Shown: in pieces, positions 18,101-46,725 of the stretch
How the letters are laid out: the number at the start of each line of letters is the position of its first letter
How positions within the stretch are numbered: the stretch's first letter is position 1
Assembly (NCBI GenBank): GCA_004764695.1
Contig: SMSO01000004.1
Location: 1,240,001-1,304,000, forward strand
Direction: 5' to 3'
Source of the DNA: Schizochytrium sp. TIO01
Lineage: Eukaryota > Protista > Bigyra: Labyrinthulomycetes
Length of the DNA: 64,000 nt
Program-made: the position numbers and the translations under genes
The notes under the pieces: generated by a model
Told to the model about the DNA's origin: nothing
The model's input: only the letters and a program-made list of their open reading frames with translations
Database searches by the model: none

Positions 18101-18280
18101 TCTCACATCGTGAACAACTGAGCCTTTGATCCGCCAAAAAGAAAAAAGAAAGAGAGGAAGAGAGGAAGAGAGAAAGAGAGAAAGAGGCAGAGGCGTACAG
18201 GAAGAGAAGTGGAGATAGAAACGGAGACAGAAACGGAGACAGAAACAAAGACAGAAACGGAGACAGAAACAGAAGCAGAG
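12160..18280. repeat. Cluster of simple repeats separating GC-rich non-coding islands
   Basis: (TTTG)n ~12160, (TA)n ~12349, (AG)n ~12600, (TTTTA)n ~13776, compound (AAAC)(AAAT)(GAAT) 13921-14000, (ATTC)n ~15165, degenerate ATAGAGAAAT 17057-17255, (GAGACAGAAACG)n ~18210-18270. Confidence 0.85.
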
Positions 18281-19925
18281 AAGGAAAAAGGAAAGGGAAC
18301 GATAACTCCGTTTTCAATTTTCAATTTTTATTTTTTTTAAGTTCTTTTTTCCAAGTCTATTTTGAAAAATACAAAACTTTTTTTTTTAAATAAAATAAAA
18401 AGTGAATCTTACTACTATTAATAAGTGTTATTATAACTTATAAATAAATAACTCTATCATCAATATGAATTAGATATAATAATCAAAAGTGACCATATTT
18501 CTCAACAACCCATTGCTACTAGCAGACAGTATATTGCTCTTATAGCAATTAGAGGGTTGGAAGAAGGGCCAGTTCCAAAGGTTCCTCTTAGCGCTCTCGG
18601 AATCGAAGAGTCCCAAACGAAGAAAACCAAGTCCACCTGAATATTAGTAAAACGAAACTGCACAAGTCTGGAGATTCGGCGCGCGATGAGACAGAGCTGC
18701 CTGGCGTCAGATCGATGTGTAGAAATCGCCGATCTGTCAGGAGCCCGCGTACGAAACTTGGCTTTATGATAAGGACGACCTCGCGATAGAAGGCTGGCTT
18801 CCTGGGCCTTTCTTGAGAACTCGCGTGAGAGAGCGGACATCATGCTTTGTTGGGAAAGACAAGTTGCCAATACAGAGTCGGATGATGGCTTGGCGATGGA
18901 CCGGAGCTAGGTGGGTGAGTACGGAATCCTCCGCTGCGTAGAGTTTGAAGCTGGAAGGTTAGGACAAAAACATCATGCGAAGGTATACCAAAATGCTTAT
19001 CTGTCAAAGAGCTTGAATCAGGCAGGAATTTTAATACGCTTTCAAGGTGCTCTACACTGCGGCAAGGGAAAGCAATGGTAGCATCTGTCAAGACCGCTTG
19101 GCTTGATTCCGCAGCTTGGGACAAAAGTCAGCTTCTAGTCGAGTAATGAACATGACAGGCCAAAGCATTCTTAGAGGCTATAGGACAAATGGTCGCTGAA
19201 ACAGTGCAAATAGTGTGGCCAGAGCCATGTAAAATACGCTACCCTCTATTTCAATGAATCGCCACTGGTTCTGTCAACAGGAGCTTCTTCGCGAGGCAAT
19301 CAAGGGTACAGTACACAGTCACCAAGTTTCCTAAGAGGAGGCACAGTAGTTTTTTTTTTGTTTTTTTTTTTGTATGTTTGAAGCGTGTGATCAAGAATTC
19401 TTTGGCCCCTCCTCGATGATTTATTTTCTCTTCCCTGCAGAATTTTAAACATTGAATATATTATTTTAAAAAAGCAATATGCTATAGTTTCCCAAAACGC
19501 GGTCATCAATTTAACTTTTAAGATATAATATAAAATAGATATTTTCACATTAGGCCGTTCATGAATGTTCAGTCTAAATAGCATAGAGAAAGCAAAGGGG
19601 ATAGAGACTTTGGGTAGATAGACACTATTGTTCTTCATGCCTTCAAGACTCTGGCAAATTCCAGGAGGCGAGGGGGGGGGGTAAATTGTGAATCCCCGGA
19701 CAGACCGCTATGCCTTGATACTTCTGGTCATAATGCCGGCATGCATCTAGCCTCTTTTATGGCGTTCCTCATTCTCATGTTTGCTTTCCCTTGTCCCTGC
19801 GCTACTAATACCAAAAAGTAGTATATAGTGAACAAAATTATCGGATTAAATTATCAAATTTTTGTAGAAGCAAATAAGGAGCACACTGTTTTCACTCAGT
19901 TTTATTACCTAAAGACCATCGTGGT

Positions 19926-22900
19926 CTATTCCGTGCCCTTTCCTGTTTGATGCTGCAAGCTGTATGAGTTTACAAAGTCCTGAAAACGAACTGTTCCAGA
20001 ACCACTCTTATCGTGCTTACGAATCCATTGGTAAAGTTCAGTGTCTGCGACATGTGATCGGCCCATCTCGTTGAAGGCAGCACGCAAGCTTAAAAATCGG
20101 ATAGCTCCATCTCGACCCCCGCCATACCGACAGAATGCGCGCCATAGTGCACGAAGCTTTTCGGTTTGCATAGACTGACGCAAATTCTTGGGTAAGAAAT
20201 TTCTGATAGCCTCATCAAACGATATTTGAGGACCGCTGCGTTGCGGGTTTAAGAGTTTGGGTGGCTGACGTGATGCAGCATGGAGCATCTTCTTTACCCC
20301 CGCTTCATCCTTCCCTTTCTGTGGTTGAGATGGAGATGCAATAAAAGATTCGTGTATCAGGGGTTGTGAACTTTTCACGAGTTGAACCAAATGCTGTGCT
20401 TGGATCCAATCAATTGATCCAGTAGACTCTCCAGTTTGAAGGGTTACCCAACCCTCTACTTCTGTTCGTGTGCATAACTTTTCGCTGTCTCCGCTCAGTG
20501 CTAAGCACTCCACTAAAAATGCATACACGCGGTTAGATCCGCTCAGCAAATTAGTTGTATCACTATAGGAAGAAAAGATGCTACGATATGCTTCTGCAAG
20601 ATTTACTACCTGATGCAAATCTTCGTAACTCTCCATATTAAGCCTTTCGTGACCTTGATCATATTGACTTCTCTGATGACCACCCTTTGTCTCCTGTAAA
20701 GCCTCTACAAGAAGTCGAAAGTCTTGCTTGGAGAATAAAGTTGTCACCGCCAAGCCTAGCGAACGGGCAAGTGTCTCCACTTCTCCATTCAATACTGCCC
20801 TCATTCCTGGGAGTGAACTTAGCGCGGCCTGAGCCTGACTTGCTGTGAGCTCACCGTGCCCACCAGCATCAAATCTATCAAATGTACCATCAGCAAAATC
20901 ATGCAACCTTCCCATAGCTTGCCTTGAGATGCTTGCAGAACTGCCAGTACTGGTTCCTCTCCTCAACTTATCCTTCACAGATGTAATTTCTCCTTCGGTT
21001 CCTACCTTACTACTTGAGAGAATTTGAATATTTCGTTTGAAAAATTCTAGATGCTTGGAATAGAATAGACAAAACTCCTCGAAATTAAGCTGTCCTATCC
21101 GATGGGATTGTCTCAATGCTTCTGCAGCTGCACGACGGATGCTAGCATCACCATGCAAAGAATTGATCAAGTTTTGCATCTCTACTTTGCCAAGGTTGTC
21201 ACCCCCTTGGCGTTGCTTGAACTTTCTTTTACCTTCTAATTGTGCCTGAAAAAGGGTTCTTGCATCTACGATATCATCCCCGAGTTGGTCCATCCAAGCT
21301 GACCCAGATGAAACATGAGCTGCCGACAACAGGCGCTCTTGTGGACTTCGCAAAGGAGCGTGCCCATGCGTTGCTGCTGCTGCGACATTGGTATAATGTA
21401 ATTCTTGATCTAAAGCAGAAACGCTGTTATCACAGACTTTCAGTTCATTTGAATAAACCCCATTTGACTTTGACTCATTTTCCTCATTGTAACTCCATAC
21501 TGTTTTTCCTCTAACAGAAGAAGATTGTCCAGTCAGCTCAGAAAATAGTGTTGATGATACAGAGCTGTCATTTTTGATAATTTCAAGAAGTTGACAATCT
21601 TGCGTAGAAAGCAAAGCAGTTAACACAAGGCGAGCTTGCCTCTCTTCACGAGTCATTGCTAAGGTATCCTTTCCGATAGGACATCTGTTTGTAAGCTTCG
21701 TAGCTTCACGTGCGACAACTCCATGACTTTTCACATGCGCTACAAATTCAGCCTTGAGAGCCGACAAGATGTCAAGTCTCTTACATAAAACTTGAATTAA
21801 ATACACAGCATCTGTGCGCAAAGCCATAGACCCATTCCAAGTTGCACCGAGAGTTTGTTGAAGACGAAGCTGATGTGATTTGGCACATAACACAGTTGTA
21901 TCGTTCAGACACTCTACCAAAATATATTCAATAACCCCAGAGCGCACAAGGTCATCTTGCAGCATTGAGGATCGTGAGCATGCCCCGATGAGGCTGTACC
22001 ATGCTTGGCGCAAGCTAGTACTTCGTTGGGGCCAAGTACTTAAGATGTCTTGGTACCGATCTGCGTCCCCATTGTTTCTGGCTTCGTGCAAAATAATAGC
22101 ATTAGTTCGCAAATATGTCAGGAAAAGCTCAGCCAAATTGGATGATAGCCGTAGTCCACCGAGGGCAGCTTGCAAAAGCTCGTCATTTCCAGTGAAACCA
22201 CAAAATAAAAAGTCTACAGCCTGGGTTTGAAAATCTAATACTTCGAAACTAGCATTAGCAAGATCGACGAAATCCTCTGAAATGATTTTTGCCATCACAG
22301 AAAAGCAACCAGATTCCTCAAGCAACTTCGAAGCTTTGCCTGGCCTGAGGGCTGGATTTTCAGAAAATATCATTTGATAGGCAAGTGAGAGGGCTATGCA
22401 CAGAACTGGAATCCTTTCTTGGGCTAGTGCAGGACTATCAAGAGAAGCTTCCCAAAAATTGACAGTCCAAACCTCAAACACAACCTTGAGTAGTTCAATA
22501 TATAGATCATCAAGATGGCGTGCTCCAACATAATCAGTGCTCACAGCAACACGCACCCTTACCAAGAGCTGAGTGACCTCTTTCACTAGACTTGCATCCC
22601 TTGCTTCTACTAATAGCCGCCCCAACTGCGTATCTGCGCCCGAGGGGTCCACAATTGCAATATTTGGCACTTCAATGCTAAATTCATCGTGTACTAGCGA
22701 GACAAGGGTAGGGTAAGAATGAAATAGACACATCAATGTTCGAGTTCCGTATGATGCGATAGAAGCACACATCGAAGCTGCTAAGGCGCAACGTGACTTT
22801 CGTAAAACATGCAGTAAAGCTGGGAAAACATCACAACTTTGCCAAGCAGCCGTCATGGTATCGCCAGCCTTTACATGAGTTTCTAAAATTTGAAGGGCCA

Positions 22901-25900
22901 GGTTGCGCGCTTTCTCATTCTCACCTAAGACATGTTGGACCAACATCGCAACACATGATACTGATGCAAAGGCACATGCCATTTCGCGCTGACCATTCCA
23001 GAGTATAGAATTACCTTGACTATTCGCATGATGCGCGCGCAGTCCTAAATGATGAAAGGAATTCAGCTTTGTTGTGCTTTCAAGAAGCGCTTTTGCGCAT
23101 TCCATTGCTAATTGACTCAGATCGTCGTCTTCGTCTCCAATCATGCTTGCTACTTGCTCTGCTACACACATATCTATGCACAGTAAGATGTGTCCAGTAT
23201 CTGTGGAACGAAGAAGTGAAAGGATTTGGCGTCCGGCAACAAACCTAGAACGAGACTTACGCTGGGTTGAGATCATTTGAGATAAACAGTGTCCAAGATT
23301 AAGCACCTCGCTATAGTATGTATGCGAACGGCAGAACACTGCAGTTGACGATTGGTTATCTACACGATTTTGATCTTCTTCATCTTCCCATGTTCCATGC
23401 TTACTGATGTATTCGCGGATCCCATGGTAGCGTGGATTTCCCCCGCCTTCTTCTGTAACAATTTGACGAATGAGAGGAGATACTAGACGCTCCAACTCAG
23501 GTGTCCAATGATTTGCACAGTCATTTCGGACGTTTGAAGAATTAAACGGAAATAGAGAGTTCTCTTCACCGCAATAAAGACACATCATAGAATGTAAAAG
23601 CGCACCAATATGGTTTGCCATAGGTAGAGATCCAGCATTTGTTAAAGTGGTTTTGCCGAATTCTGACGCGATCGTTTGAAAAGCAAACACTACACGCTGC
23701 ATGATCCTCACTCGTATTGGATCATCAGAATTGCCTTCAACAAAACCGAGATTTGTCAGACCACGGCCAGTCGTATCTGCCACGCCTCCACTGGAGAAGA
23801 AACGCAAAGAAAGTTTAACAATCGTCTGTAGAGCACCCATTCCAACTACCTCGTCACAAAGTGTTGGAAGTTTGGAGCCTACTTCCTCATCAGCCGTGGT
23901 ATTTGCAGGAGCACAGCAGCACTCCACAACAGCGTCAATTGCGTCTAAAAGCAACCGAGGATCAACTGCACCATTTCCCCATGGTTCTGCATCTCGTGAA
24001 TACGACTGTACAAGTAAAATATCCAAAGGCACTCTCACGCCCTCAGTAATATTCTTCGATATGCAAATTTGACCCACCCATTGCTTTGCAGCTTCTGAGG
24101 CTTGATGAAATGAATGTTCATCCATGTTTGCACAAACTATATCAAATGCACTTTCTGGTGTAATTCGTTTTGCAGGATCTGCTGAGAGAAATTGCATGGC
24201 AAGATCTATTACTGAGAATTTTCCTGTTTTGGAACCGGTTGCGTTGCATCCAAAGTAGCTTCCAAACTTAGCTGCGTTGGAAATAGCTATCAGTTCTGCC
24301 AGACTTCGGGTCTCATCAGCATTTGATTGTTCCTTTCGCTCCAAGTTCCTTGTCGCATCTGGAAATCCTTCAGCTGGACACAGCTGCAACTCGCCACGAG
24401 GACCAAGTACAAATGGTCCTTGCAAGGCGCTCTGACGTTTTGTCGTTGTAAGGCTCAGCTCAAAACAACCGTACGGGAAAGTCTTGCCACTTGCAGATGG
24501 CGGCCGCCCAGAGAGTAACTCCATAAGTAAACAACCGAGGCAATAAACATCATAGGACGCTGTTGGCCTTTGCCCTTCTTTGGTATCCTCGACTGGGTTA
24601 TAATCATATTCTTCTGGAGACAAAACCTCGCCAAGATCAGGGCCAGAAAGCATGGAGCCACGCAACTCGTCCTCCATAGAAAGTACTCCTGCAGTGGCAA
24701 AAGAAGCCAGGCGTAAGAACCTTCCACATGGCGACACAAGAATTTGTCGAGGCCGTGGACCACGTAAAATAACCCCTTTAGAATGCACTTTTTGCAAAAT
24801 GATTAAGAGTTGACAGACCCACAATTGCAAAAGGTGTACTGCAAACTCACCACCTAAATAACCATGTGCATCCAGACACTCGCGTAAGGTTCTCCAGCCA
24901 GGTAAGGCTCCTAATACAACATGTCGCGAGTTGGCCTTCTTTAGTTCTTCCGTGACGTCATTTGATTCTGTGGGTCGTACATTATCTATGACAATAGGGG
25001 CAATGTTGTCTTCTCCAAATAGTCGATACATTGCAACCTCGCGCTCCAGATGAGCTTCATAAGGTTGACCATCATAATTCTGAATTCGATCAAGTTTTTC
25101 GGCACTTACAACATTTACAAGAAGGTCTACATAACTCTCAGCAGATTGCATGTTGCGGAACCATCCCCGTGATCTATGAACTAGGCGTTGGGGCATGTTT
25201 AAAAAGGATAGTGAACTCTGTTCATTACTATCAATTCGATACGATACTGTAGCCTTTGATTGAAGTGCGGATAAAATTTTGGACTCATAAAATGCAGAGA
25301 CCTTTGATATTTCTTTCATGAGCGACCAGTCAGATACATTTGAAACAGTAACCTCTCGATCCTCTTCACTTTGGTGAACAATATCATCTGAGGCAGAAAG
25401 CTTGTCATTGATCAATCGAATTGCGTGGTTTTTGAGGCCATTTGAAAGGCTGATGAGACTGTTTTTACAGTTATTCACCTCCTTTTCGCATGTGTGTGCA
25501 GCAACCAAACTTGCTAATTCGTGTAATTTAGAGGAAGCACATGGATGGCCTGCTGAATATTTCTGACCCATCTCCCTTGCCTGGGCCATGGCATCCCGCA
25601 CTGACCAAAATGGGTCAACTCGGCTCGTAAGCATTGAAAATGTAGCTTCAGTAAAGCCAAATATCGTTTCGTCGGATTGGTAGCTTATATGTAACTTCTT
25701 GCACATATTGTGAATCCAATCTGGAGGATAGGCGTCACGTTCTAAAAAGTTGACCTTGGCAAGGACATCAAAGGCTTCTGCTGAGGTCAAAACTTTGCTA
25801 CGCGCCTCGTCAACGCAATATAGCAGCGTTTGTAGCGTCACAGTGGTTCGTTTTCCTCCACGAGTTAATTTCGCTGTAAAATCACTGAGAGTACTTCCGA

Positions 25901-28900
25901 GCCCATAGCGAAGCCCCAGCGTTGTAACTTCATCTCCACTTGCGAGATCGCATTGAATTGCCTCAACCAAATCTTCAGTAGAGCAAGTTGGCCCGCGAGC
26001 AACGCGAGCGAATAGTTCTTGAAAGCTGGTCAACATCAATGAGCGACACTCTCCCCATCTGGTTGGTAGGCAACAAGCTAAACGAAATGCTTTAGCAACG
26101 AGCCCCTGGGCATCTAGTTTCTCCGCTGCACTCAGCGAGCTCTCACGAAGATAAGCACCAATTTGAATAAGTAAACTAGTCTCTATTTCCTGCAGCGAGG
26201 TTTGTTGCAAACTGTTAAGTGTTGATTGTGCTCGGATACTTTGATGAGCCATTGCTCTCCAGCGCGACCTTGCCTTCAAAGCTTCGAGTCGGTGTTCACT
26301 CGAAACATATTGCGCAATGTCTCGAGCAGGGGTCATTATATTGATACGGTCAACCGACCATACTGCAACACCCATGCCGCCATCTGGCTTAATAAATAGC
26401 GCAGAGAGTAGCTCAATCACCTTGGAAGGTGATGAGCTCATTCCAGCACTAATATGTTGCAGAGAGTGAGAGCCCAGGTGTTGCTTGCTCACATCGTCAT
26501 TATCACCAATTTGATGAAGACGTACTTGTTCTCCGCTTCGCAAGTCTCGAGATTGAGCAGAATCTGAGAGTGGCTCTAGCATATGCCTAGGCAGTTTTAA
26601 AAGTCCACGCTGAGCATCATAGGCAACCTCGTACACAGATTTATTGATCCGCCTGGTTATAACACCTACTTGGTCCGCTACACAATCAAGGGACGTAGAA
26701 CGAGGATTCACTACAACATTATCGACACCGTCCCCTACCTGGTAGAATGGATAGATATAAACATGTGGACTTTCTAGAGCTCTTGACATTGACTCGAGAT
26801 CAAGCAATGCAAGACCTCCGCGCTCTAGCGAAGCTCTTACCTCGAGCACATTCCGAGCCTCAATAGAGACAAAATAAATGACCCGCAAAACCTCTCCACG
26901 TCGGCGATAGATCTCTCTCAAATTATCTGTTCCAGACTGCCAGCCTCCAACATGCGTCATAGCGCCAGCCATACCAAACAAGGCACGATCTTGAAGCTGA
27001 ACCATACGTTCATCAAAGCCTTCAGAAGGAACTACAATGACCTGGCCAGTAGTGAGAACATAGGCAAATCCTTGGAGAAGGTGATCATCACGAGCAAGAC
27101 CTTCTTTAAGTCGAATATCCGTGCGCCTAGCTGCCTCTGCTTGACCTAAATTCACAATGAAAGGTACATTCATATTCCTTGTTACAGAAGCAAAGTAGAC
27201 AGGAGCTAGCTGAGAGACCACAGCCGCATGAGGTACTTGAATTGAATGGACACATGCGTAAGCTTCGCTGGTTTGTGCGAATTCAGCCCCATACTCAGGA
27301 CTAAGCTCTGCGTACGCAGGGTGAGTCAATCGAAATCGACGTGCAAGAGGGTCCACTAGGTACAGGATACCATCAGCAGCAGCAGCACACACTAAACCAG
27401 CTTCGCGAAGGTACACTATTGAAGTGACTGTGGGATTTGCATTCGTCTTGACAGGTAATGATGTTGTGTAACGAGCACTAAGAACTCTTACAGTTCCCTT
27501 GCTGGATTGCATAATTGAAGGAGTCTTGAATTTATGGGTAGCAATCGCGCCAGAGAGCTCACGGAGAGAAACTTGCCCATCCTTATTTACATCAAGATAG
27601 TCATGAACTCGTGCAACATCTTCAGCATGCAGCCTCAGTTGGAGTTTGTGCAGCATGATGTTTCGAAGTTCATCAAGGGAAACTACACCATCTCCATTTT
27701 CATCAAGCTGATCAAAAAGAGTGCTTATGTCTACATATTTTGCGGGTAATGGAATCTCAACATGATCTCCCACTGCAACCTTTTCCAATGTGGGTGGTAA
27801 CTGTATTTCTGACCACGCCTCGCCAGTTGATTTTACTAGAACATCAGCATAACCCACTTGAGAAGGATATAGACGTGAAATAATAACCTCGATGGTACGA
27901 TGCCCAAGTACAATTACTTCACTCCCTATTTGAAAGTGATTCTCCAAATTTTTGCTCGCTGGAGAAATAACCCTCAATCTCTCAAAAAGAACATCAAGTT
28001 CTGAGCCACCTAGCGTATCCATATAGCGCACATTTACTGCGGTCGAAGAAACTGCAATAATTTTTGCACGGCGGCCAAGTTCTTCATTATCATCAATAGT
28101 AGCTTTAAATGCTAGCGCTGTGCGAAATTTAGAAAGCAATTTCTGTAAACTTCGTGAGCTGGAGTCGTTGTAAACTTGCCTCCACCGCATTTGCTCTGCT
28201 AAATCCCAAAAGTGAATTTGACCGTGACTATCTCCTGCAACAAGGAATTCTGCTTCAGAAACATACAATAGTCGTGGTGGCGTCAAAGGCATTTCTCCAG
28301 CTGACACGATTGCAATTGCATGCCCATATCTTGCACATAACACTTGGACGCTTGTGGATCCATTTGAAACAGAACAGAAAACCGTATCCCATCGAGAAGA
28401 ATACAAAGCCACCTCAATTGTGGCTTCAGTGAGAGCCTCGTCGCGGTTGAGGGGCAAAAGCTGCACATCACGAAGCACTCGAAGGCTTAGAGAGTCAAGC
28501 AAACGGAACCGGCCATCGATTGCGGCAGTACACACGCAGACAAGCGAGGAGAGTTTGTCGAATTGTAGAATACTCATTGTTCTTGCTCCAGAAGCTATGG
28601 CATGTCGCACCTTAGAGTCTTGTGGAAGCACAGCTGTGCATGCAAGTTGCCGGGTAGCGTTCATTGTCCAGGATTCCAAGTTGCCGTTGACAAAGAGAAT
28701 AAAAAGATGCTGAAGCTCTTCATCACATACAACTTCATACGCTCTTGCTTGATCAACATGTCCAATGGTATGTTCTTGTTCAGTAACTCCCCAGAACAAA
28801 TTAGAGCGTCCTGTGCTTGACTGGTCAGCAGTCAAAGGAATTTGCACGCACGCTGCAACATCAGCCCACACTATGCTTGATGTTCCTAGTCGCTGTGCAC

Positions 28901-31640: not shown

Positions 31641-34600
31641 TCGAGTTAGATGCTTCCAAACGTGCTGGTACAACATGTGCAAACGAGGCAATAAACTCGG
31701 CAACAGAAACTGAACCGTCATTATCAATATCACGAGCACGAATCCAATCCGCTACAGCTGCATCGCTGTTATCATGACCACGTTGCCGGAGGGCCTCTTT
31801 CAAGTCACGTGCAGTGATATATCCATCACCATCGATGTCCATGCTTTCGAAAACCTTTCGAATCATTTTAAGTTGAAGTTCCTCTGTGGCTGAACGTGCA
31901 TGCATTGTGCTTTGAAATTTGTCCATGTCAAAGCTTTCGAGTTGCTCAATGGGAGCTCCAGCTTTGATTTGCTTGCGCAACTCTCTTTGTTGGGAATGCT
32001 CGCCACCTTTAACGGAGGGGGCGCCTTCAATAATGGTTGCTCTCCCTGTAACGATGGTTACTTCAAGGGCTTTTAAAGCGCCCTCTAAGTCCACTTTGCG
32101 TCGCCAGAGCATATTTTCCACTTCTTTGGTCAACTCAGGGAAGTGAAAGCTCTTGGTGGATGAGGCTGTACCAACTAAACCTGTCTCTGTGCCACGAAGT
32201 ACGAAAACATCCGCCCTCTGATCTTGAATAAATCCAATAGCACTCATGAGCTCATAGCCATGCGCCCACTGCCCGATCTTGCGCATAAAACTAGGGTTAG
32301 CACACCGAATTCTCCACTTGCGTGAGTCTTTTGGATTTTGAAGTACATCCATAACGATTGATAGAGCCGTCTCTAATACCTTTCGAAGTTCTGCAAGAGT
32401 GCACTCATCCTGGAGGTGACGTACGACTTCGCCCACTGTCAGTGCTCCACCATCAATAACACGAAGCTCTTGCTCGATTTCTTCTCTCCGGACCGTCAGC
32501 ATTACACGTAGGTCTTGAGGCAAACCCTCCACCATAGCTCGCCCGTGTTTATCAGCGATCCCACGCAAAGCCAGCATCTGAATTTTTCCTTCTTCAGAAA
32601 TTACCCCTGATGCCTTACGTTGCGGAGCAAATCCAATCGCATCCATGAGCTCAATTCCTCCACGAAGCCGACCAACTTTAGCATAAAAGGACTTATCATG
32701 CACTCGAATTTGCCAAAGGTTCGCGTCATCAGGACGAGCAAGTATGTCATTAATAAGCTGCAGCACAGTTTCTGCAGCAATACGTAAATCACGAGGAGTC
32801 TCATGCAACCGCAGCATCGCAAATGCAGCTGGTACTGTTGGTGAACCCGTAATATTCTCAAAAACGAATCCAAATGCAGCTAGGAATTCGGGTAGAGAAG
32901 TCTGAGTTCTAGTTTTAGAAAATGCTTCGATGGTTGCACGTAGAGGCACTGGATCCCTTGCTGCACTTCGTAGCAGGGATTCAGTATTCGAGGTATTAAT
33001 TTCACCAGATTCCTCAGAATCAATATTTTCGAAAGCGCGAATGAGTTTCTTCAATGCATCAATATCTTCTGTAGAACGCCCAATACTAAGTTTCCGCAAA
33101 AACGCCTCATGTTGGACCCTTGTGCCTTTCCATTCGCCGGATCGAAAGATTTGTGCAGCTAATGCAGCTATAGTTTCGGTGTCCCCCATCGTGCTACGTT
33201 GTCCCAAAGTTGCACCACCAGTCTTCCCAGACCCCCAAAGTTTCTCATAATAACTCCCGACTCGTCCAAACTCATCCTTCTCAGGGTCACAGAACATGTA
33301 TACATAAGCATGTGCAAATTCCGGTAATGACAAGGCATCATGTTTACGTAAACCCATAATACGCATGTACTCTCCAACCTGTGATATGGATGCCTCCTTT
33401 CCAGTACTCACGAGCGCCACGCGAAAATATTTAGCCGGGAGAATACGCCTTCCACGCCTGGTTTTTGAACAATACTCCTCAAAAGCATCTTCTATTGCAC
33501 CAGTTGTATCGTGATCCAATTGTTTGGCCCAAGCTTCTTTTTTCCAGAGCTTGCGTTCTGTAACTTCTGCGCCACTCGAAAATGAAGACTCAGAAGAATA
33601 AGAAAAGGACCGCGAACGATGTTTAGAACGCATTGATCGGCTACGACTGTGGCTGCGACCACGCCTTCTTGTCGTGTGCTTGTGATGGTCCGCCGATGAA
33701 GATGAGTCGCTGCTGTCTTCAGACTCATCACCGAACATAATTCCAGTGTAAGCCTGAATGAATTCGACTAAAGTTACGCTTCCGGACCCATCAGCGTCTA
33801 CCTCTTGCATCCACTTACGGATATCAGAGCGAGAAAAACTTTTCCCCATGTCTCGAAAGGTTCGAGCTACTTCATCCTCGGTAAGCTCCCCATTTCCGTC
33901 GTGATCATACTTATTGAAGGCTCTCTGCAATTCACGAAAACGTCTAGTGCCTAATATTTTCTTACAACGAGCCAAATAATCAGCCTCCTCTTCAATATCT
34001 TGCAAAGATGGAGGCCGATGACCATGGCCGGCTTCGCGAGCGGCGAGACGCCGCATTTTTGACCAGATAGATTTGCGTCCTGATTTTCTGGGGGAAGCAG
34101 ACTTACGATTTCGATCAGCTGTGCGAGGACTAGATAGACGGACACTGTCAGGTGTTTTGCGCTGCTCTTTATCGCCATCATCGTAATCAATGTCCACAGT
34201 GCCATCTCGGTGAACAGTTACGATCCTGCCTGGATACCAAGCATCTCCACCTCCGAATTGAGCCTTTACTCGATCTCCAACTTGAAACTTCTTCTTGGAA
34301 CTTTCACGAGGACTTCTACTCCTACTCCTACTTCTGCTACGGGCTCTGGAGCGCCTCCGCTCGCTCTCAGAGCTCTCCTCACTACCAGATACATCTGTAT
34401 CTTCTAAAACCCCTAATGCGATACATATGCTTTTGTACTCCTCGAATGTCAAAGCTTTTGAGGTTTGCATACCTTTTTGTTTACAAAACATATATGCATC
34501 CTTTCTTTGGTCTGAGCTAAGTGGTGTCCCAATGGTCTTTCGAATAACCTCAGCTGCAGTTCCTGGCGTGACGCGGCTCTCACGATCAAAGACGTACTTA

Positions 34601-37600
34601 AACCTCTTCACTTGCTCATTGTCCCGGCCACTTGTGGATAAAGAACGCCCTCTATTGGTTTTGACTGCATCAAATGGCTCAATATTTGATGCTGCAACTT
34701 GGTCATCAAAATCACCATCGTCAAAAGCAACAGCATACGTTCCGTCCCGATTAACATTTGAGATCTTGCCAATGAAGTACTCTTCACTGCCTTTAAAGCG
34801 AGCTTTGACTTTGTCACCCCTTGATAGGGAGCCTTTGACGCGTGAGCTGGCATCTCGTCGTGGAGAAGATATTTTCCGGATTAGTTCAGACGAAATGTGA
34901 CGCTCCTTGTCTCCATCATCATAATCAATAGAATATGTCCCGTCACGATGCTCAGCAGTAATTCGACCTTTGTACCATTTGGAACCGCCTCCAAATTTAG
35001 CTTCGACATGCTGATTAATACGGAAAATTTTCTCGTCCCGAGGCGACCTAGACTGCGCACTGTTATCACGGCGTGGTGATCGAGACCGAAGTCGTTCGTT
35101 TCTCCGAGGTGACCGTGAACGTAATCGCGAACGTGGACTTGTTCTGCGAGGCGACGACCTATCTGCGCTTTTAATCAAAGACGGCTTAACGCGAGTCTCG
35201 CGGTCCCCATCGTCGTAGTTAATATCACACGTTCCATCAGAGTGCACCTTGCAAATGACTCCTGAGTATAGTTGTTGGCCGCCTTGGAAATAGGCTTTAA
35301 CTCGTTGACCATCAACAAATGTAGCTTCCCCGGAAGAGCTCTCCTCACGTTCAGACCGCCTAAGAAGAGAAGCACTAACATTGCTTTCACTGTCGCCGTC
35401 GTCATAACTGACATCATAAGTGCCATCGCGATGAACACGTCTGATAGTTCCTGGAAACCAGTTTCCTCCACCTCCAAATCGACCTTCTATACGTTCACCA
35501 GTACGAAAGTCAGAGGTGAGAGATGAGTTAGTTTTCCCACCACGCGGGGATCCTGCCCGACGGACAAGCTTGGGTGGGACCCGTTTCTCGCTGTCACCAT
35601 CATCGTAATCAATATTGTACGTCCCGTCCCGGTTCACGTGAGTAATTTTACCTTTGTAAAATTTTGATCCACCCTGAAATTTGGCTTCTACCCGATCTTC
35701 AACTTTAAATGCTGATTCTCGATCCTGATCTGTGTCATTGTCTGTTGAAGGTGATATGACCTCTCTATTTCCAGACAAAAGTCCCAATTCATCACATATG
35801 CCAAGCAATTGGTCAAACGAAAGTTCATCTCGCGCACCAGCGCCCTGATTTCTTGCAGCTGCCATCATCCCTCGTCTCTCAGATGAAGTGAGTGCTCGCC
35901 CAAGAAGCTTGCGAAGCAGTTCTACAGCTGAGCCTAGTGTTACGCCTTTGGTTTCCCGGTCAAAGAGATATCGAAGACGATCTTCTTCGCCTGATTTTGG
36001 TCTAGCCTTTGCACGATGTGACGTCTGCTTCAAGCGAATAAGTCTGACTGGTACTCGCTTCTCAACATCACCGTCATCGTATGCTATGTCGTATGTTCCA
36101 TTGGTATAAGTTCGAGTAATAACTCCATTGTACCACTTATTTTGCCCACCAAAACGTGCTTCTACTTTATCGCCACGTTGGAAAGTATTTTGTATGTCGG
36201 TTTCAGAGTCAGATCCTACTTCGGTACGGGTGCGTGGTGATCGCGACCGCGATCGCGATCGCGATCGTACACGAGGGCGGGTATCTAATGGTTTAATATC
36301 TCCAATGTGAACTCCTTGCTCTGCATCTCCATCGTCGTATGTTACGTCATATGTTCCGTTGGTGCGAACTTGAGTGATAGTTCCAAGATAGTATTTGGAT
36401 CCTCCGCCAAATCTCGCCTCGACTCTATCACCTCGCTTGAAAGCTTGCTGTGAAGCCTCGCCGACGGATAGTTCGTCCCGCCGTGGGGACCGTGAACGAC
36501 GCCGCACCTGTGAGCGGGAACTTTGATTTGTTGACTGAATCATTGAAGCACGAACGCCTCTTTCAATGTCTCCATCATCATAAGCAATATCATACGTTCC
36601 ATTGGCATGCACACGTGCAATAGTTCCTGGATAGTATTTATGACTGCCACCAAATCGTGCTTGAACTTTTTCTCCACGTCGAAATCCTTTGACATCAGCT
36701 TCACTTTCTGCTTCGGATTCGCCAACCGAGCGTTGCTTATCTCTAGGAGAGCTTGAACGGCGCCGCCCCCCCCTAGCGCGAATCATTAAAGAGCGCACGC
36801 CCTGCTCGGCATCTCCATCATCATACTTTATGTCATATGTACCATTACTATGCACCCTTGAAATTGTTCCACTGTACCATTTCAATTTCCCGCCAAATCG
36901 GGCCTCAACCTTATCTCCACGTCGAACAGTCTGTTCTACCTCGCTATCAAACTCCGAATCCATACCGCCTCGATCACGAGGCGATCGAGATCGTGCAACA
37001 CGTCCTTTAGCCCGAATCATAGATGCGCGAACGCCTCGCTCAGCATCGCCGTCATCGTATGCTATGTCGTACGTCCCATTCATGTGCACCCGTGTAATAG
37101 TACCACTGTACCATTTTGATTTACCCCCAAATCGAGCTTCAACTTTGTCACCTTTTTGGTACGACTGTGCTTGATCTAGTTCGCTCTCGGCGTCCGTATC
37201 GATTGTCGATCGATGACGAGGAGATTGCGAGCGAGGGTTTCGGTCCAGGGTACGGATAAGCGCAGATCGGACGCCACGTTCGGAGTCTCCATCATCATAT
37301 GCAATGTCATATGTTCCGTTGAAATTGACTCGTGAGATAGTGCCAGTAAACCATTTAGATTTTCCACCAAATCTAGCTTCGACTTTTTCTCCACGTCGAA
37401 ATCCCTTGGCATCCGTATCACTTTCCGCTTCCGAGTCTACTGGTGGTGCTCGATGGCGCGGTACATTAGCACGAATACCATTGTTACTTGGGCGAATCAT
37501 TCCCGAAGATACACCTTGCTCGGCATCTCCATCATCATACTTTATGTCATATGTACCATTACTATGCACCCTTGAAATTGTTCCACTGTACCATTTCAAT

Positions 37601-40600
37601 TTCCCGCCAAATCGGGCCTCAACCTTATCTCCACGTCGAAAAGTCTGTTCTACCTCGCTATCAAACTCCGAATCCATACCGCCTCGATCACGAGGCGAAC
37701 GAGATCGTGCAACACGTCCTTTAGCCCGAATCATAGATACGCGAACGCCTCGCTCAGCATCGCCGTCATCGTATGCTATGTCGTACGTCCCATTCATGTG
37801 CACCCGTGTAATAGTACCACTGTACCATTTTGATTTACCCCCAAATCGAGCTTCAACTTTGTCACCTTTTTGGTACGACTGTGCTTGATCTAGTTCGCTC
37901 TCGGCGTCCGTATCGATTGTCGATCGATGACGAGGAGATTGCGAGCGAGGGTTTCGGTCCAGGGTACGGATAAGCGCAGATCGAACGCCACGTTCGGAGT
38001 CTCCATCATCATATGCAATGTCATATGTTCCGTTGAAATTGACTCGTGAGATAGTGCCAGTAAACCATTTAGATTTTCCACCAAATCTAGCTTCGACTTT
38101 TTCTCCACGTCGAAATCCCTTGGCATCCATATCACTTTCACTGTCTGATTCAGCATGGCTTAATGTACGACGCGGAGAACGTGATATTGGTCGTATGTCT
38201 GGAGAATCTAGGCTTCGAATCATAGATGCACGAACCCCTTGTTCTGCGTCACCATCGTCATAGTCAATATCAAAAGTATCATCCATATTAGCTCTCGTGA
38301 TAGTACCCTTGAACCATTTACTACCACCTCGAAAACGAGCTTCTACTTTTTGCCCTCTTCTAAATTCCTCACGTTCTTGAAGACTACCCTGAGGACAGGC
38401 CTCTTCCCGAATTGCATCAGACGAACAAGATAGAATACCAAGAGTCTCACAGAGTTCCAGAAAAGTCGTTTCTGTAAAAGAATCCCTAGGTCCAATTTGT
38501 CTATCTTTCACAAAATCACTGATTTGTTTCCTCTGAGATGCAAGAACAGGTCTACCCGTTAACTTCCGAAGTAAAAGCGACACATTACTCGCTGTGACTC
38601 GAGAGCTCGTTTGGAATATGTCCAGAGCCCTTTCTTCGTCCATGGAATTGGGATTCTTGCTTACTCCACGAGAATTTTGCGATGATGATGATTGTAAAGA
38701 CGAATTCTCATAGTTCATTCTAGCGCTACGAGATGGGGGCGATCGTCCCGTATTCCGCAATTGTCTTGGTGAAGACACTTCTCTTCCAATTGAACGAACC
38801 AAATATGGCTCAACACCTCGTTCTTGATCACCATCCGCGTAATTTATATCCACAGAACCATTTGAATGAACCCGAGCAATTGTGCCCTTGTACCAGCGCG
38901 ATTTCCCCCCAAACCTGGCTTCTACTTCCTGGCCTCTCTGGAATGACTGTTCTTCAGCATCAGATATTACATTATCTTGATAGCGACTTGACCGAAGAGA
39001 TTCGCGTTTAGATGTCCCTGCGCTAGATTTACTACCTGAAAACTCTGTAGAGGTTTCCGGTGATGCATTTGATGTGTCCTGTACTCCTAAGGCTCCACAG
39101 AGGTCCTCAAACTGCTCTAGTTCAAAGATGTCTCTGGGGCCGATACCATTAGATCTTGCAAATGATTGAATCTTTGCTCGCTGGGATCCAAGTACAGGTC
39201 TTCCAGTAATTTTTCGTATAACGTTTGAGACATTGCTAATAGTGACACGCCTTTCTTGAAGAAACGTTTCTTGAATTAGAGATCCACTCTGGGGCCCTCC
39301 GCGAGCATTGGTCTTACCAACCATGTGTTCCTCTTCTGTAGATGTCACTGATGCTACTCCAGGGGATGCAGGTCCAGTCCTCAATCTTGAAGAAGATACG
39401 TTTGCTGGTCGAATCAAGGACGCCGAGACGTTATGCTCTGCATCGCCATCATCATATTTGATATCAAATGTGCCGTTATGGTTCAAACGGCGAATAACGC
39501 CAGGAAACCAATGTGATCCACCGCCAAACTTTGCTTCAACTTTATCGCCAACTAGAAAGTTATCCACTCCAGTATCACTGTCGAGACCGCTGTCAAATCC
39601 CATGCTTGATCGCCCATGGGTATTATCGAGACTTTGAATCAGGCTTACATCAACTCCTCTTTCTGCATCCCCATCATCATAATCAATGTCATATGTTCCA
39701 TCACTATTGACTCGTCGAATTTTACCATTAAACCAGCGCGAGCGTCCTCCGAAACGAGCTTTGACGGCCTCTCCACGAGCAAAACTAGGGCTGGCAGGCG
39801 TAGGAGAGCGAGGATTGTGCGGTGCATCATGATTCTGGTGACGAACCTCATCACCTGACGTATCTTCTACTAGTCCCAATTCTTGGCATATCATTTCTAT
39901 TTCTTCGAAAGAAAGTAAATCTCTTACACCAAGTCCTAAGCGTTTTCCAAATTCTTGAATTTGGCTTCGTTGACGAGAGAGTACTGGTCGACCTGTTACT
40001 TTCCTGAGAAATGACGATACTGATGCTAGAGTGACTCTGCGCTCTTGATCAAAGAGATCGCGAAGACGTTCATTACTTTTATGTCTAACATCTGATACCA
40101 TTGAGGTCTCACTATTTGATCTGTGTATTCCGCGGGTGCGGGTAAAAGACGGCGAAGACGTCCTTTGTCTAGAGGTAGCGCTTGCTCGCCTTGAAGTTGT
40201 TGTCATGCCTTCTTCTTCTTCTATCTTAATCCCTAACCGTTCACAAAGGTCAAAGAATTGTTGCATTGTCACTTCTGTACGAGGAGTAGCGCCAACTTCT
40301 CTTTGAAATGCCATCAGTTGCTGTCTTTGAGAAGATAAAACCGGTTTGCCAGAGACCTTTCGTAAGATCATGCCAAGTTTGTTAAAAGTAACAGGTGCTT
40401 CTGCTTCAAATATCATTGCGACTTTGCTTGAGTTGCGGTTTGACCCAGTATCAGTTGCACCGCTAGGTGGGGAACGTTGGGCATCTGAGAATTTTGTCTC
40501 TGGTAACTTATCTTCACTCACAGCATGCCTAGTTTGTGGGGATAGTCCTCTGTTCTGACTTGATGAGGAGGGTCGAATGCTGATGCGAAGCTGGCCCGTA

Positions 40601-41190
40601 GAGTCTGACAGTGCACACAGTGAGCGTTCTATGCCTTGGTCAAGCAACTTTGCTATTTTGAACTCGCGACTTCCAAGTTTTGTGGGGCCTTTTAGTTCAT
40701 CAGCCCAGAGTTCAACCATCAGACTTGCCTCAGGATCATCTAAAATATCTGCATTTAGATCCATCGTGGTTTCTTCTTCCCAGCGGGGCTGCTCACCTTG
40801 TTTTACGCTCGTTTGCCACTCTAAGGGCCTTCGAGTGTACTCCGCCTGCAAGACGACCTTGACAAAAGGGTACAGCTCATCTTGAACCTCCACAATACGT
40901 CGCAGCCTTCTACCTTCATGAATAGAGATGTGCAAGCTCCACTGGCCAGGCTCCCCTGTGGCAGACTCTCGAGGCCGTCTCAAGGGTCTTGCTGGAGATG
41001 TTCTAGTCACTTCTGCTCCTCGATTTGCTGCCACCATTCTTGATCTTCTCGGTTCTGCAAATGAGGTTGCGGAGTTTGACGGTGATAGTCTGCCTGAAGG
41101 TGATCTCGAATGACGCGGTGCATCCCAGTCATCGCGAGCCCTACGTCGTGGGCTCTCCAGTTCGCCGTCAGACCCCACCTCCGGACCCAT
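31582..41190 (-). CDS. N-terminal part (~3,200 aa) of giant multidomain protein: C2, 19 Tudor-like repeats, RS-rich linkers, 6 degenerate EF-lobe repeats, EF-hands, 2 PUB domains
   Basis: C2: LHISIHEGRRL...YPFVKV...QTSVKQGEQPRWEE...LMVELW. Tudor-like consensus F-RGDKVEARFGG-SKWY-G-I-RV--NGTYDI-YDDGD-E-GV counted 19 times. EF loops DHDGNGELTEDE, DADGSGSVTLVE, DIDGDGYITARD, DIDNDGSVSVAE. PUB: LINDILARPDD...GGIELMDAIGF and IVMDVLQNPKDSRKWRIR...GYELMSAIGF. First ATG at 41190 (track start 41244 is GTG). Confidence 0.88.
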   Translation of the reverse strand: MGPEVGSDGELESPRRRARDDWDAPRHSRSPSGRLSPSNSATSFAEPRRSRMVAANRGAEVTRTSPARPLRRPRESATGEPGQWSLHISIHEGRRLRRIVEVQDELYPFVKVVLQAEYTRRPLEWQTSVKQGEQPRWEEETTMDLNADILDDPEASLMVELWADELKGPTKLGSREFKIAKLLDQGIERSLCALSDSTGQLRISIRPSSSSQNRGLSPQTRHAVSEDKLPETKFSDAQRSPPSGATDTGSNRNSSKVAMIFEAEAPVTFNKLGMILRKVSGKPVLSSQRQQLMAFQREVGATPRTEVTMQQFFDLCERLGIKIEEEEGMTTTSRRASATSRQRTSSPSFTRTRGIHRSNSETSMVSDVRHKSNERLRDLFDQERRVTLASVSSFLRKVTGRPVLSRQRSQIQEFGKRLGLGVRDLLSFEEIEMICQELGLVEDTSGDEVRHQNHDAPHNPRSPTPASPSFARGEAVKARFGGRSRWFNGKIRRVNSDGTYDIDYDDGDAERGVDVSLIQSLDNTHGRSSMGFDSGLDSDTGVDNFLVGDKVEAKFGGGSHWFPGVIRRLNHNGTFDIKYDDGDAEHNVSASLIRPANVSSSRLRTGPASPGVASVTSTEEEHMVGKTNARGGPQSGSLIQETFLQERRVTISNVSNVIRKITGRPVLGSQRAKIQSFARSNGIGPRDIFELEQFEDLCGALGVQDTSNASPETSTEFSGSKSSAGTSKRESLRSSRYQDNVISDAEEQSFQRGQEVEARFGGKSRWYKGTIARVHSNGSVDINYADGDQERGVEPYLVRSIGREVSSPRQLRNTGRSPPSRSARMNYENSSLQSSSSQNSRGVSKNPNSMDEERALDIFQTSSRVTASNVSLLLRKLTGRPVLASQRKQISDFVKDRQIGPRDSFTETTFLELCETLGILSCSSDAIREEACPQGSLQEREEFRRGQKVEARFRGGSKWFKGTITRANMDDTFDIDYDDGDAEQGVRASMIRSLDSPDIRPISRSPRRTLSHAESDSESDMDAKGFRRGEKVEARFGGKSKWFTGTISRVNFNGTYDIAYDDGDSERGVRSALIRTLDRNPRSQSPRHRSTIDTDAESELDQAQSYQKGDKVEARFGGKSKWYSGTITRVHMNGTYDIAYDDGDAERGVRVSMIRAKGRVARSRSPRDRGGMDSEFDSEVEQTFRRGDKVEARFGGKLKWYSGTISRVHSNGTYDIKYDDGDAEQGVSSGMIRPSNNGIRANVPRHRAPPVDSEAESDTDAKGFRRGEKVEARFGGKSKWFTGTISRVNFNGTYDIAYDDGDSERGVRSALIRTLDRNPRSQSPRHRSTIDTDAESELDQAQSYQKGDKVEARFGGKSKWYSGTITRVHMNGTYDIAYDDGDAERGVRASMIRAKGRVARSRSPRDRGGMDSEFDSEVEQTVRRGDKVEARFGGKLKWYSGTISRVHSNGTYDIKYDDGDAEQGVRSLMIRARGGRRRSSSPRDKQRSVGESEAESEADVKGFRRGEKVQARFGGSHKYYPGTIARVHANGTYDIAYDDGDIERGVRASMIQSTNQSSRSQVRRRSRSPRRDELSVGEASQQAFKRGDRVEARFGGGSKYYLGTITQVRTNGTYDVTYDDGDAEQGVHIGDIKPLDTRPRVRSRSRSRSRSPRTRTEVGSDSETDIQNTFQRGDKVEARFGGQNKWYNGVITRTYTNGTYDIAYDDGDVEKRVPVRLIRLKQTSHRAKARPKSGEEDRLRYLFDRETKGVTLGSAVELLRKLLGRALTSSERRGMMAAARNQGAGARDELSFDQLLGICDELGLLSGNREVISPSTDNDTDQDRESAFKVEDRVEAKFQGGSKFYKGKITHVNRDGTYNIDYDDGDSEKRVPPKLVRRAGSPRGGKTNSSLTSDFRTGERIEGRFGGGGNWFPGTIRRVHRDGTYDVSYDDGDSESNVSASLLRRSEREESSSGEATFVDGQRVKAYFQGGQQLYSGVICKVHSDGTCDINYDDGDRETRVKPSLIKSADRSSPRRTSPRSRLRSRSPRRNERLRSRSPRRDNSAQSRSPRDEKIFRINQHVEAKFGGGSKWYKGRITAEHRDGTYSIDYDDGDKERHISSELIRKISSPRRDASSRVKGSLSRGDKVKARFKGSEEYFIGKISNVNRDGTYAVAFDDGDFDDQVAASNIEPFDAVKTNRGRSLSTSGRDNEQVKRFKYVFDRESRVTPGTAAEVIRKTIGTPLSSDQRKDAYMFCKQKGMQTSKALTFEEYKSICIALGVLEDTDVSGSEESSESERRRSRARSRSRSRSRSPRESSKKKFQVGDRVKAQFGGGDAWYPGRIVTVHRDGTVDIDYDDGDKEQRKTPDSVRLSSPRTADRNRKSASPRKSGRKSIWSKMRRLAAREAGHGHRPPSLQDIEEEADYLARCKKILGTRRFRELQRAFNKYDHDGNGELTEDEVARTFRDMGKSFSRSDIRKWMQEVDADGSGSVTLVEFIQAYTGIMFGDESEDSSDSSSSADHHKHTTRRRGRSHSRSRSMRSKHRSRSFSYSSESSFSSGAEVTERKLWKKEAWAKQLDHDTTGAIEDAFEEYCSKTRRGRRILPAKYFRVALVSTGKEASISQVGEYMRIMGLRKHDALSLPEFAHAYVYMFCDPEKDEFGRVGSYYEKLWGSGKTGGATLGQRSTMGDTETIAALAAQIFRSGEWKGTRVQHEAFLRKLSIGRSTEDIDALKKLIRAFENIDSEESGEINTSNTESLLRSAARDPVPLRATIEAFSKTRTQTSLPEFLAAFGFVFENITGSPTVPAAFAMLRLHETPRDLRIAAETVLQLINDILARPDDANLWQIRVHDKSFYAKVGRLRGGIELMDAIGFAPQRKASGVISEEGKIQMLALRGIADKHGRAMVEGLPQDLRVMLTVRREEIEQELRVIDGGALTVGEVVRHLQDECTLAELRKVLETALSIVMDVLQNPKDSRKWRIRCANPSFMRKIGQWAHGYELMSAIGFIQDQRADVFVLRGTETGLVGTASSTKSFHFPELTKEVENMLWRRKVDLEGALKALEVTIVTGRATIIEGAPSVKGGEHSQQRELRKQIKAGAPIEQLESFDMDKFQSTMHARSATEELQLKMIRKVFESMDIDGDGYITARDLKEALRQRGHDNSDAAVADWIRARDIDNDGSVSVAEFIASFAHVVPARLEASNSKSCNRDCQAYPICIEKWIW
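36803..38128. repeat. Near-identical intragenic direct repeat: 612 bp x2 (36803..37414 and 37517..38128, offset 714 bp), each encoding three Tudor-like units
   Basis: Identical anchors tgctcggcatctcc at 36803/37517 and ggcatcc ending at 37414/38128; only a handful of mismatches seen. Confidence 0.9.
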
Positions 41191-41757
41191 ACGAGCCCCG
41201 CGCGCCGCTCCGCACAGGCATCCTCCGCAAGGTTCCCGTAGCACTGAAGAAGCTCTCGCCGTCCTGATCTAGCGTGGTCTGAATTCCAATCCCTCTATTC
41301 TTCAATTCCAAAGTTAAGCTCCGCTCGTTCCTGTGTTTCACATTTACGGAGCACTCCACATTTCTCCATTCTCCGTTGAGAAAGCAAAAAGCGGTCTAAC
41401 GGGCGGTAAAATAGGTCTTTAATTTCCTTCCTACGGTTGCCTATGCGACTCTTACTATCGTGCTTTCTGGGCCTTTTGGGGCTTCTTGGCCTTTCCTCTT
41501 TTATCTCTTTTACCTCCTTTATCTCTTTTATCTCTTTTATCTCTTTTATTCTGTCCTGTTTTTTGTTTTGATGGTTCAGGTTTCCTTCCATTCATGGGAA
41601 ACCTACAGGCAGAAGCAGATTCATGAGGTTATGGGATGGCTCAAGGCTTTGTCAAGTTCGGGGAGAAGACAGCTGTTTGCAGAGTGTTTTCCCAATCTTC
41701 TGTACACGTCAAGGGTGGGTAAGTGTGCAAGGATGGACGGGGTCGTACCTTCGCGTC

Positions 41758-46187: not shown

Positions 46188-46725
46188 TGAGAGAAACAAT
46201 GATGATACAGAATTCCTTGCGACTCCTTGTATGGAGTTTTGTTTTGGTTTGTGTTGGCAGAGGAAATTGCAAAAAACAGTATATCTTGAGCAAGAGGTTA
46301 TATGAAAGCAAGGAACTTGAATCAAAACAGAGTATTGACCTAATTGCACGCTGTATTTCGCAAGAAAGTGCCTGGTCCCTTCTGGATTCTTCCTTGGGTA
46401 GAGTCCTTAGCTCAACGACGACTATATGTTTCCTACCTGTGCACGATTGCAACAGAGCTAGAAGTGGCCAGCTGGATTAGTATGAGCGGCTTTGCCTGTT
46501 GCGATTCCGTTGGTCTCACAGAGTAACTGAATCAGCTTATCTCTGATAAATACCTCAGCGTATCTATTCTCTACGAGACGTGGATGTGCGACACCGTTAT
46601 AGCCTTGGATATAGTTTGGAACCGCGTTGAATGAAGGACTTGATGGGGCGTTTTTCAAGAGTTCGCGAATATTATAAAAGCTAGGTCCAATGAATATGTC
46701 TGATTGTTCAGCACGTGAATGTCGT

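Follow-up and report, generated by a model that had tools for sequence, protein, structure and literature searches.

A giant intron-free gene of Schizochytrium, split by one surplus base, probably encodes a Tudor-, EF-hand- and PUB-containing scaffold of about 7,090 residues

We analyzed a 64,000-nucleotide (nt) stretch of the Schizochytrium sp. TIO01 genome (assembly GCA_004764695.1, contig SMSO01000004.1, positions 1,240,001 to 1,304,000; hereafter the window), in which two very long open reading frames (ORFs) occupy adjacent frames of the minus strand. Our analysis indicates that the two frames are likely to be one single-copy, intron-free thraustochytrid gene for a multidomain scaffold of about 7,090 amino acids (aa), which belongs to an uncharacterized family found in Labyrinthulomycetes and oomycetes. 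The encoded chain is predicted to start with a C2 domain, two helical modules and 19 Tudor repeats with four more helical modules interspersed, to continue with an EF-hand pair, two EF pair-PUB-PUB modules in series and further EF-hands, and to end with a beta-propeller-like region carrying an inserted EF pair, a pseudokinase, an ARM/HEAT solenoid and EF-hand pairs (Table 1). The split between the two frames is most likely caused by an assembly consensus error or by a very recent, possibly heterozygous, mutation, and marks no gene boundary.

ORF1 (41244..31582, minus strand) comprises 3,220 aa by translation table 11, with its first ATG at 41190, and ORF2 (31739..19926, minus strand) comprises 3,937 aa. 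The two overlap by 158 nt, and ORF2 is offset by +1 relative to ORF1, which corresponds to a single surplus base. From the ATG at 41190 to the stop at 19926 there are 21,265 nt, equal to 7,087 codons, the stop and one extra base; the ORF geometry thus matches a first-pass annotation of this DNA, which had described two frames one base apart that join into a 7,087-aa protein. Open frames this long cannot have arisen by chance at the local G+C content of 45%. The gene is present as a single copy in the host genome, which consists of 64 Mb in 37 contigs. In all searches reported below, ORF1, ORF2 and their segments were used separately, and the joined 7,087-aa translation was never the query.

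The evidence for one protein comes from homologues that pass through the junction between the ORFs in a single frame. An exhaustive profile-free search, with the 1,200 residues directly downstream of the junction as the query, revealed a family of very large proteins. Our best match to the gene was a 6,315-aa protein of the thraustochytrid Hondaea fermentalgiana (P0001), named 'NAD-dependent deacetylase sir2E', of which residues 1304-2023 align to ORF1 aa 2441-3196 with 66% identity and residues 2058-5676 to ORF2 aa 62-3742 with 47% identity, the junction being crossed in one frame. A 4,821-aa JGI predicted protein on a 425-kb JGI contig (P0003), composed of a C2-like start, Tudors, EF, three PUB domains and EF, aligns through residues 1103-1708 to ORF1 aa 2565-3192 and through residues 1711-2544 to ORF2 aa 57-1032. 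P0006, P0018, P0005, P0013, P0020 and P0021 are likewise continuous across the equivalent point. The one-protein reading put forward in the first-pass annotation is therefore strongly supported by P0001, P0003 and at least six other homologues; these proteins, at least eight in all, are continuous at this position.

The homologues also reveal what the junction interrupts. In eight of them, a single frame leads from an EF-hand loop (D.D.DG.VS..EF..SF) through a variable linker of 10-45 aa to the motif ..A.AFG.LRL, which, like the V.xAFxxxRL form, can be aligned with helix 1 of the PUB domain of UBXD1. Given that this motif is the first PUB helix in single-frame homologues, the junction splits a domain module and does not separate two genes. 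The module itself (EF pair, V.xAFxxxRL, PUB, PUB) occurs once within ORF1 and once spanning the junction, and internal comparison confirmed the earlier proposal that its second copy straddles the break. These observations bear directly on the alternative that the locus comprises two adjacent genes, one for a Tudor/PUB protein and one for a PUB/pseudokinase/ARM protein, or a chimeric misassembly. In formal terms the locus does contain two ORFs, an ATG is present in ORF2 at 31721, and a homologue from the MMETSP collection (P0002) spans the C-terminal part only; but the break lies within the repeated module, after the EF pair and before the first PUB helix, where at least eight homologues are uninterrupted, and the overlap of the ORFs leaves no intergenic space. 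We regard a two-gene or chimeric origin as extremely unlikely and as already largely refuted.

We scored every possible single-base deletion with the giant gene's own codon usage. The likelihood reached its maximum of 22.8 at 31,652-31,634, compared with 18.1 at an A5 run (31,598-31,594) and 15.7 at the frame-1 UGA stop. A shift at the A5 run is disfavored by these values, and a shift at the UGA (a 'shifty stop') is about 7 nats worse than one in the linker. Comparison with Hondaea was informative on both sides: frame 1 resembles the Hondaea protein up to FAHVVPAR (FAHTVPPR in Hondaea) and frame 2 is recognizable from LKNGSGE, while the frame-1 tail, CNRDCQAYPICIEKWIW, is rich in Cys and Trp and has an out-of-frame appearance. 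An intron beginning directly after FAH at 31674 was rejected, as frame 1 is still Hondaea-like through VVPAR. Judged from codon usage and alignment, the surplus base most likely lies at approximately 31,634-31,657, in a poorly conserved linker and not at the frame-1 stop. A search of metagenome contigs for exact 24-mers beside the junction gave 0 matches.

The length of the linker also bears on splicing. From FAH to VAIAF there are 127 nt, or 42 codons plus 1 nt, and the Hondaea counterpart is 45 residues long; the surplus base therefore accounts for the split, and an intron is unnecessary. A spliceosomal intron of very small size, with a length of 1 modulo 3, such as a 34-nt GT...AG segment at 31661-31628, could draw on several frame-restoring GT...AG candidates, but those in the likelihood plateau are just 22-49 nt long and lack a strong splice consensus, the linker of 42 aa is already shorter than that of Hondaea before any removal, and the rest of the 21-kb gene is intron-free. 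Such an intron is highly improbable.

We next considered the sequence context of the break. An in-frame GAA-G is found at 31,655-31,652, only 1.65 nats below the likelihood maximum. This context accounts for 1.7% of codons, and the chance of encountering one is about 60% in the 55-codon overlap and about 13% in the likelihood plateau. In the same contig, at 1,309,000-1,323,000 (approximately 5-19 kb past the end of the window), there are three further adjacent-frame ORF pairs in which both frames have a strong coding signal. Every pair is shifted by +1 and carries an in-frame GAA-GG in its overlap; in one pair, a repetitive peptide (HEEDHVEDHEEDHEEVHE before the break, EDHEENHEEE after it) fixes the surplus base as the G after GAA. 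In a 200-kb control stretch on another contig (C13), no adjacent-frame ORF pair with a comparably strong coding signal was detected. This amounts to four +1 breaks in about 85 kb of one contig versus none in the 200-kb control, in a comparison that was made post hoc. Such a cluster resembles a local systematic consensus problem more than it does genome-wide decoding or four independent mutations. The GAA-G in the giant gene is compatible with the same process as the neighboring breaks.

A programmed +1 ribosomal frameshift or other recoding, with the frame-1 stop (UGG-UGA-G) and the in-frame GAA-G as its two possible sites, would fit the three neighboring genes that require a +1 correction at GAA-GG and the closeness of GAA-G to the likelihood maximum in the giant gene. 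Yet the homologues are all single-frame, so that recoding would be new to this lineage, and a shift at the stop is penalized by both its likelihood and the out-of-frame look of the tail behind it. In addition, we know of no slippery re-pairing from GAA to AAG, an in-frame GAA-G is expected by chance at the frequencies given above, and the 200-kb control contains no strong pair. The conserved shift at a slippery codon or stop that defines programmed +1 frameshifts was not found, the orthologues being single-frame and the UGA disfavored. We therefore consider recoding very unlikely, and the specific version in which GAA-G is decoded as a +1 site in the giant gene and in at least three unrelated genes about 30-40 kb away on the same chromosome a shade less probable again; were it true, a programmed frameshift of a new type would have come to light in a stramenopile.

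The extra base might instead be real in the strain, which would make the locus a very recent pseudogene or null allele, possibly heterozygous. The protein would then end after about 3,200 aa, with C2, the Tudor array and the first EF/PUB module, and translation of the C-terminal 3,900 aa would be lost. This assembly does not look riddled with indels, as illustrated by the control stretch, and the shift does not coincide with a long homopolymer, where consensus errors usually arise. On the other hand, the frame is otherwise intact over 21 kb, so inactivation would have to be extremely recent, and the three additional +1 breaks in the same GAA-G context within about 40 kb make a local consensus problem likelier. 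We regard a genuine inactivating base as unlikely; the frameshift most likely originates in the assembly, in which the giant gene will be mis-annotated as two genes.

The family to which the gene belongs is conserved among stramenopiles and is already represented in databases, where it is uncharacterized. Besides P0001 and P0003, it includes a partial 4,203-aa protein of the oomycete Achlya hypogyna (ACHHYP_04747, P0170) with Tudors, EF-hands, three PUB domains and a terminal EF pair, the MMETSP transcript P0002, which covers ORF2 aa 359-3927, and several metagenomic ORFs of up to 7,637 aa, the longest on a 27.7-kb contig. No family member has an informative name. P0001 (47-66% identity) and P0003 (26-49% identity) share with the giant the order C2, Tudor array, EF, PUB modules, EF, propeller-like region, pseudokinase and solenoid, including the same N-terminus as its C2 region and a continuous junction. 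They differ from it in having fewer Tudors, with N-terminal regions of about 1,300 and 1,100 aa, respectively, compared with 2,440 aa, and the Hondaea protein additionally possesses a C-terminal SIR2 domain and lacks the last EF pair. The Achlya protein resembles the giant in its Tudor array, EF-hands, three PUB domains, long C-terminal region and terminal EF pair, but its identity over the EF/PUB core is 28% and its N-terminus is partial. A full-text literature search yielded nothing on this domain combination. The first-pass statement that no characterized protein has this architecture is consistent with these results, which add that uncharacterized homologues exist in databases; architecturally, the giant is a new variant assembled from known modules.

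In the N-terminal half, the previously assigned C2 domain scored above the Pfam cut-off. The 19 Tudor-like domains of the first-pass annotation were recovered as exactly 19 repeats with a hidden Markov model (HMM) built from the repeats themselves. Pfam matches to the array included Tudor_5 (308 bits, cut-off 31), PTM_DIR17_Tudor (213) and Agenet (198), as well as SGF29 and 53BP1. The closest solved structures to the repeat profile were PHF20 Tudor 2 (best, E 1.6e-5), PHF20L1, KDM4A and 53BP1. PHF20 and 53BP1 Tudor domains bind methyl-lysine, and the Tudors of PHF20L1 and KDM4A are methyl-lysine readers. Positions F14, Y38, D39 and D40 show little or no variation over the 19 repeats and, by alignment only, correspond to the W, F, Y and D of the PHF20 cage ('ACW...KFYDG'). 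Between the Tudor repeats are linkers with RS, RSP and RSPR runs in addition to acidic Ser/Asp/Glu runs, in agreement with the arginine/serine (RS) region noted previously. SR splicing proteins combine RS with an RNA-recognition motif (RRM), and no RRM was among the Pfam matches; nor was a link to SR kinases found for the RS linkers. A role for RS phosphorylation, which had also been suggested, is without specific support and is pure speculation.

Two features of this half are newly recognized here, as is the SIR2 gene described below. One is a tandem duplication of a three-Tudor block, with identical Tudor repeat peptides at aa 1044 and 1282. The near identity of the 714-nt copies (95-99%) points to recent expansion of the Tudor array. 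The array is still expanding, and the 714-nt repeat is a candidate site of assembly collapse or expansion. The other is a helical module present in six copies, with the consensus F..E.RVT..VS..LRK.TGRPVL.SQR..I..F....G.GPRD..TFE.F..LC..LG and 10 columns that are invariant over the six copies, including RK, G, C and LG. This module had no Pfam match and no significant match in a PDB profile search, and an Atlas search gave sub-threshold leads only, among them a weak one to 'Ca2+-insensitive EF hand'.

The first-pass annotation had further assigned EF-hands and four PUB domains. Several EF-hand pairs and, in total, eight canonical 12-residue EF loops (PROSITE PS00018) were detected, with EF-hand_7 and EF-hand_1 above their Pfam cut-offs, which bears out the assignment of EF-hands. 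Of the PUB domains, three exceeded the cut-off of Pfam PF09409 (62.2, 39.9 and 35.9 bits, cut-off 34.3), whereas the fourth, PUB-like domain 3, fell below it, is divergent and was recognized through weak internal similarity; its VAIAFGLMRLF motif is kept in all homologues. In PNGase and UBXD1, the PUB domain recognizes the C-terminal D-L-Y-G/S motif of p97. We identified the Cdc48/p97 orthologue of this genome (contig C34:470757-475958, ORF 1375-3771, minus strand) as a 798-aa protein with no intron within the ORF, which scored 835 bits against a cut-off of 803 and ends in ...EDDDEDLYS. A predicted complex of PUB1-PUB2 (ORF1 aa 2795-3060) with the last 40 Cdc48 residues scored 0.30 against a mark of 0.34, a value that counts neither way.

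In the C-terminal half, AlphaFold2 run with a seven-sequence alignment modeled the beta-propeller-like region as four-strand blades with a predicted local distance difference test score (pLDDT) of 54. The top Foldseek matches of this model were all beta-propellers, with template modeling scores of 0.1-0.3, and Pfam gave faint WD-type matches only (E 0.03-0.2). A propeller of some kind is thus weakly supported by a low-confidence model, while the more specific WD40 label of the first-pass annotation found no Pfam WD40 match above cut-off. An Atlas search with ORF2 aa 400-1000 produced no usable match.

The kinase-like domain scored 25.9 bits with Pkinase, below the cut-off of 31.7, and its similarity to PDK1 is restricted to the C-lobe. 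Relative to PDK1, HRDLKPEN is replaced by LRGPRPRQ, with the catalytic Asn changed to Gln, and DFG by SFA. The catalytic positions are non-catalytic in all seven of the aligned family members (7/7), which marks this kinase-like domain as a probable conserved pseudokinase, in line with its earlier designation. For the ARM/HEAT region proposed next to it, the structural model was all-helical, with pLDDT 70-90 and continuous helix pairs over about 590 residues (model residues 250-840), and its structural matches were designed armadillo proteins, importin-alpha/beta, CAND1 and beta-catenin. The fold-level prediction therefore supports an ARM/HEAT-like solenoid of about 800 aa; no Pfam repeat match was obtained for this region. 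With the fourth PUB and the propeller as the two less certain assignments, the domain list of the first-pass annotation holds up almost throughout.

Several points weigh against reading the locus as one intact gene for a scaffold of this composition. The Hondaea and P0003 proteins are gene predictions, and transcript P0002, although labeled 'complete', starts at the equivalent of ORF2 aa 359 and lends no support to a full-length mRNA. At the domain level, one PUB copy is divergent, PUB1 is substituted at canonical motif positions, and the propeller model is of low confidence (pLDDT 54).

Table 1. Predicted features of the giant gene, in order from its 5' end (positions are those of the window)
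Feature	Position	Strand	Details
Whole gene	19926..41190	-	intron-free, one extra base, ~7,087 aa; orthologues colinear with both halves
C2 domain	40636..40938	-	ORF1 aa 103-203; Pfam PF00168, 30.1 bits, cut-off 22
Helical module, copy 1	40213..40431	-	~70 aa; one of six
Helical module, copies 2-6	39856-40074, 39067-39285, 38419-38637, 35767-35985, 34393-34611	-	repeat alignment
Tudor array	34138..39783	-	19 repeats of ~50 aa; HMM from the repeats, E 1e-25 to 1e-32
Tandem duplication of three-Tudor block	36551..38151	-	714-nt period; copies 95-99% identical in DNA
EF-hand pair, canonical	33745..33936	-	ORF1 aa 2437-2500
PUB domain 1	32614..32781	-	ORF1 aa 2822-2877; helix VPAAFAMLRL just upstream; aligns to UBXD1 and PNGase PUB
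PUB domain 2	32191..32388	-	35.9 bits; Pfam match in two stretches
EF-hand pair	31684..31863	-	ORF1 aa 3128-3187; opens second EF/PUB/PUB module
Likeliest extra-base site	31634..31657	-	variable linker between last ORF1 EF-hand and PUB N-terminal helix; codon usage
PUB-like domain 3, divergent	31290..31571	-	ORF2 aa ~57-150; starts VAIAFGLMRLF; internal match E 7e-4
PUB domain 4	30933..31118	-	ORF2 aa 208-269; 62.2 bits; most canonical motif
Two canonical EF loops	29340..29756	-	ORF2 aa 675 and 788
Beta-propeller-like region	26340..28742	-	ORF2 aa ~1000-1800; EF-hand pair inserted at 27552-27728
Pseudokinase	24120..25097	-	ORF2 aa ~2215-2540; PDK1 and PknB C-lobe similarity, E 3e-6
ARM/HEAT-like alpha-solenoid	21540..24047	-	ORF2 aa ~2565-3400; predicted fold only
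EF-like pair, weaker	20685-20924	-	near C-terminus
EF-hand pair, C-terminal	19962..20141	-	ORF2 aa 3867-3926; also covered by MMETSP transcript P0002

The next gene downstream on the same strand, 8.7 kb away, encodes a 765-aa SIR2-family protein with a poly-Q N-terminus (8915..11212, minus strand). Over its last 340 aa, this protein shares 75% identity with the C-terminus of the Hondaea giant model, which indicates that synteny is conserved between the two species. The presence of this SIR2 tail in the Hondaea protein and the absence of the final EF pair suggest a merged gene model, and the Hondaea entry probably combines two genes; alternatively, the fusion may reflect a real functional link between a methyl- or acyl-mark reader and a deacylase. 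The approximately 8.7 kb between the two genes (11213-19925) contain no ORF longer than 150 aa, have a G+C content of up to 0.50, and carry low-complexity and microsatellite tracts with TTTAT, AAAT and GGAGACAGAAAC repeats. On the other side of the giant gene, a chain of ORFs at 44.5-47.0 kb that was considered as a possible frameshifted gene is actually microsatellite: a long (ACAATA)n/(ACTATA)n tract at about 46700-46960 produces spurious minus-strand frames of 100-180 aa. An Rfam scan of the whole window gave no match.

Individual parts of the giant protein have counterparts in known systems. UBXD1/UBXN6 and PNGase (NGLY1) contain PUB domains that align with those of the giant, N-terminal helix included, but these proteins are small and have a single PUB next to catalytic or UBX/VIM modules, whereas the giant holds four PUB copies in 7,000 aa and no UBX, VIM or PNGase core by Pfam. 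TDRD proteins and Drosophila Tudor likewise present many Tudor domains in one chain; those of the giant are minimal, at about 50 aa and in 19 copies, whereas TDRD Tudors are extended, SN-like and bind methyl-arginine. For the combination of RS/acidic linkers with C2, EF, PUB and pseudokinase domains, no described counterpart was found in the literature.

From this domain composition, we propose that the protein would function as a Ca2+-responsive scaffold, in which the Tudor array would provide multivalent binding of methylated ligands, the PUB domains would dock the C-terminal DLYS tail of Cdc48/p97, and the pseudokinase and solenoid would offer additional protein-binding surfaces. A Ca2+-regulated scaffold that joins methyl-mark reading to Cdc48/p97 recruitment is plausible on sequence grounds, given the conservation of cage-aligned positions in the Tudor repeats, the canonical form of the EF loops and the DLYS tail of the genome's Cdc48.

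If made as one chain, the protein would be among the largest encoded without introns, and it would combine a 19-Tudor methyl reader with four Cdc48/p97 docking modules, Ca2+ sensors, a pseudokinase and a solenoid. The adjoining sirtuin, fused to the giant orthologue in the Hondaea model, which is misnamed 'sir2E', hints at a pairing of reader and eraser. The range of the family extends over thraustochytrids, which are industrial producers of docosahexaenoic acid, and oomycetes, which include major pathogens of plants and animals.

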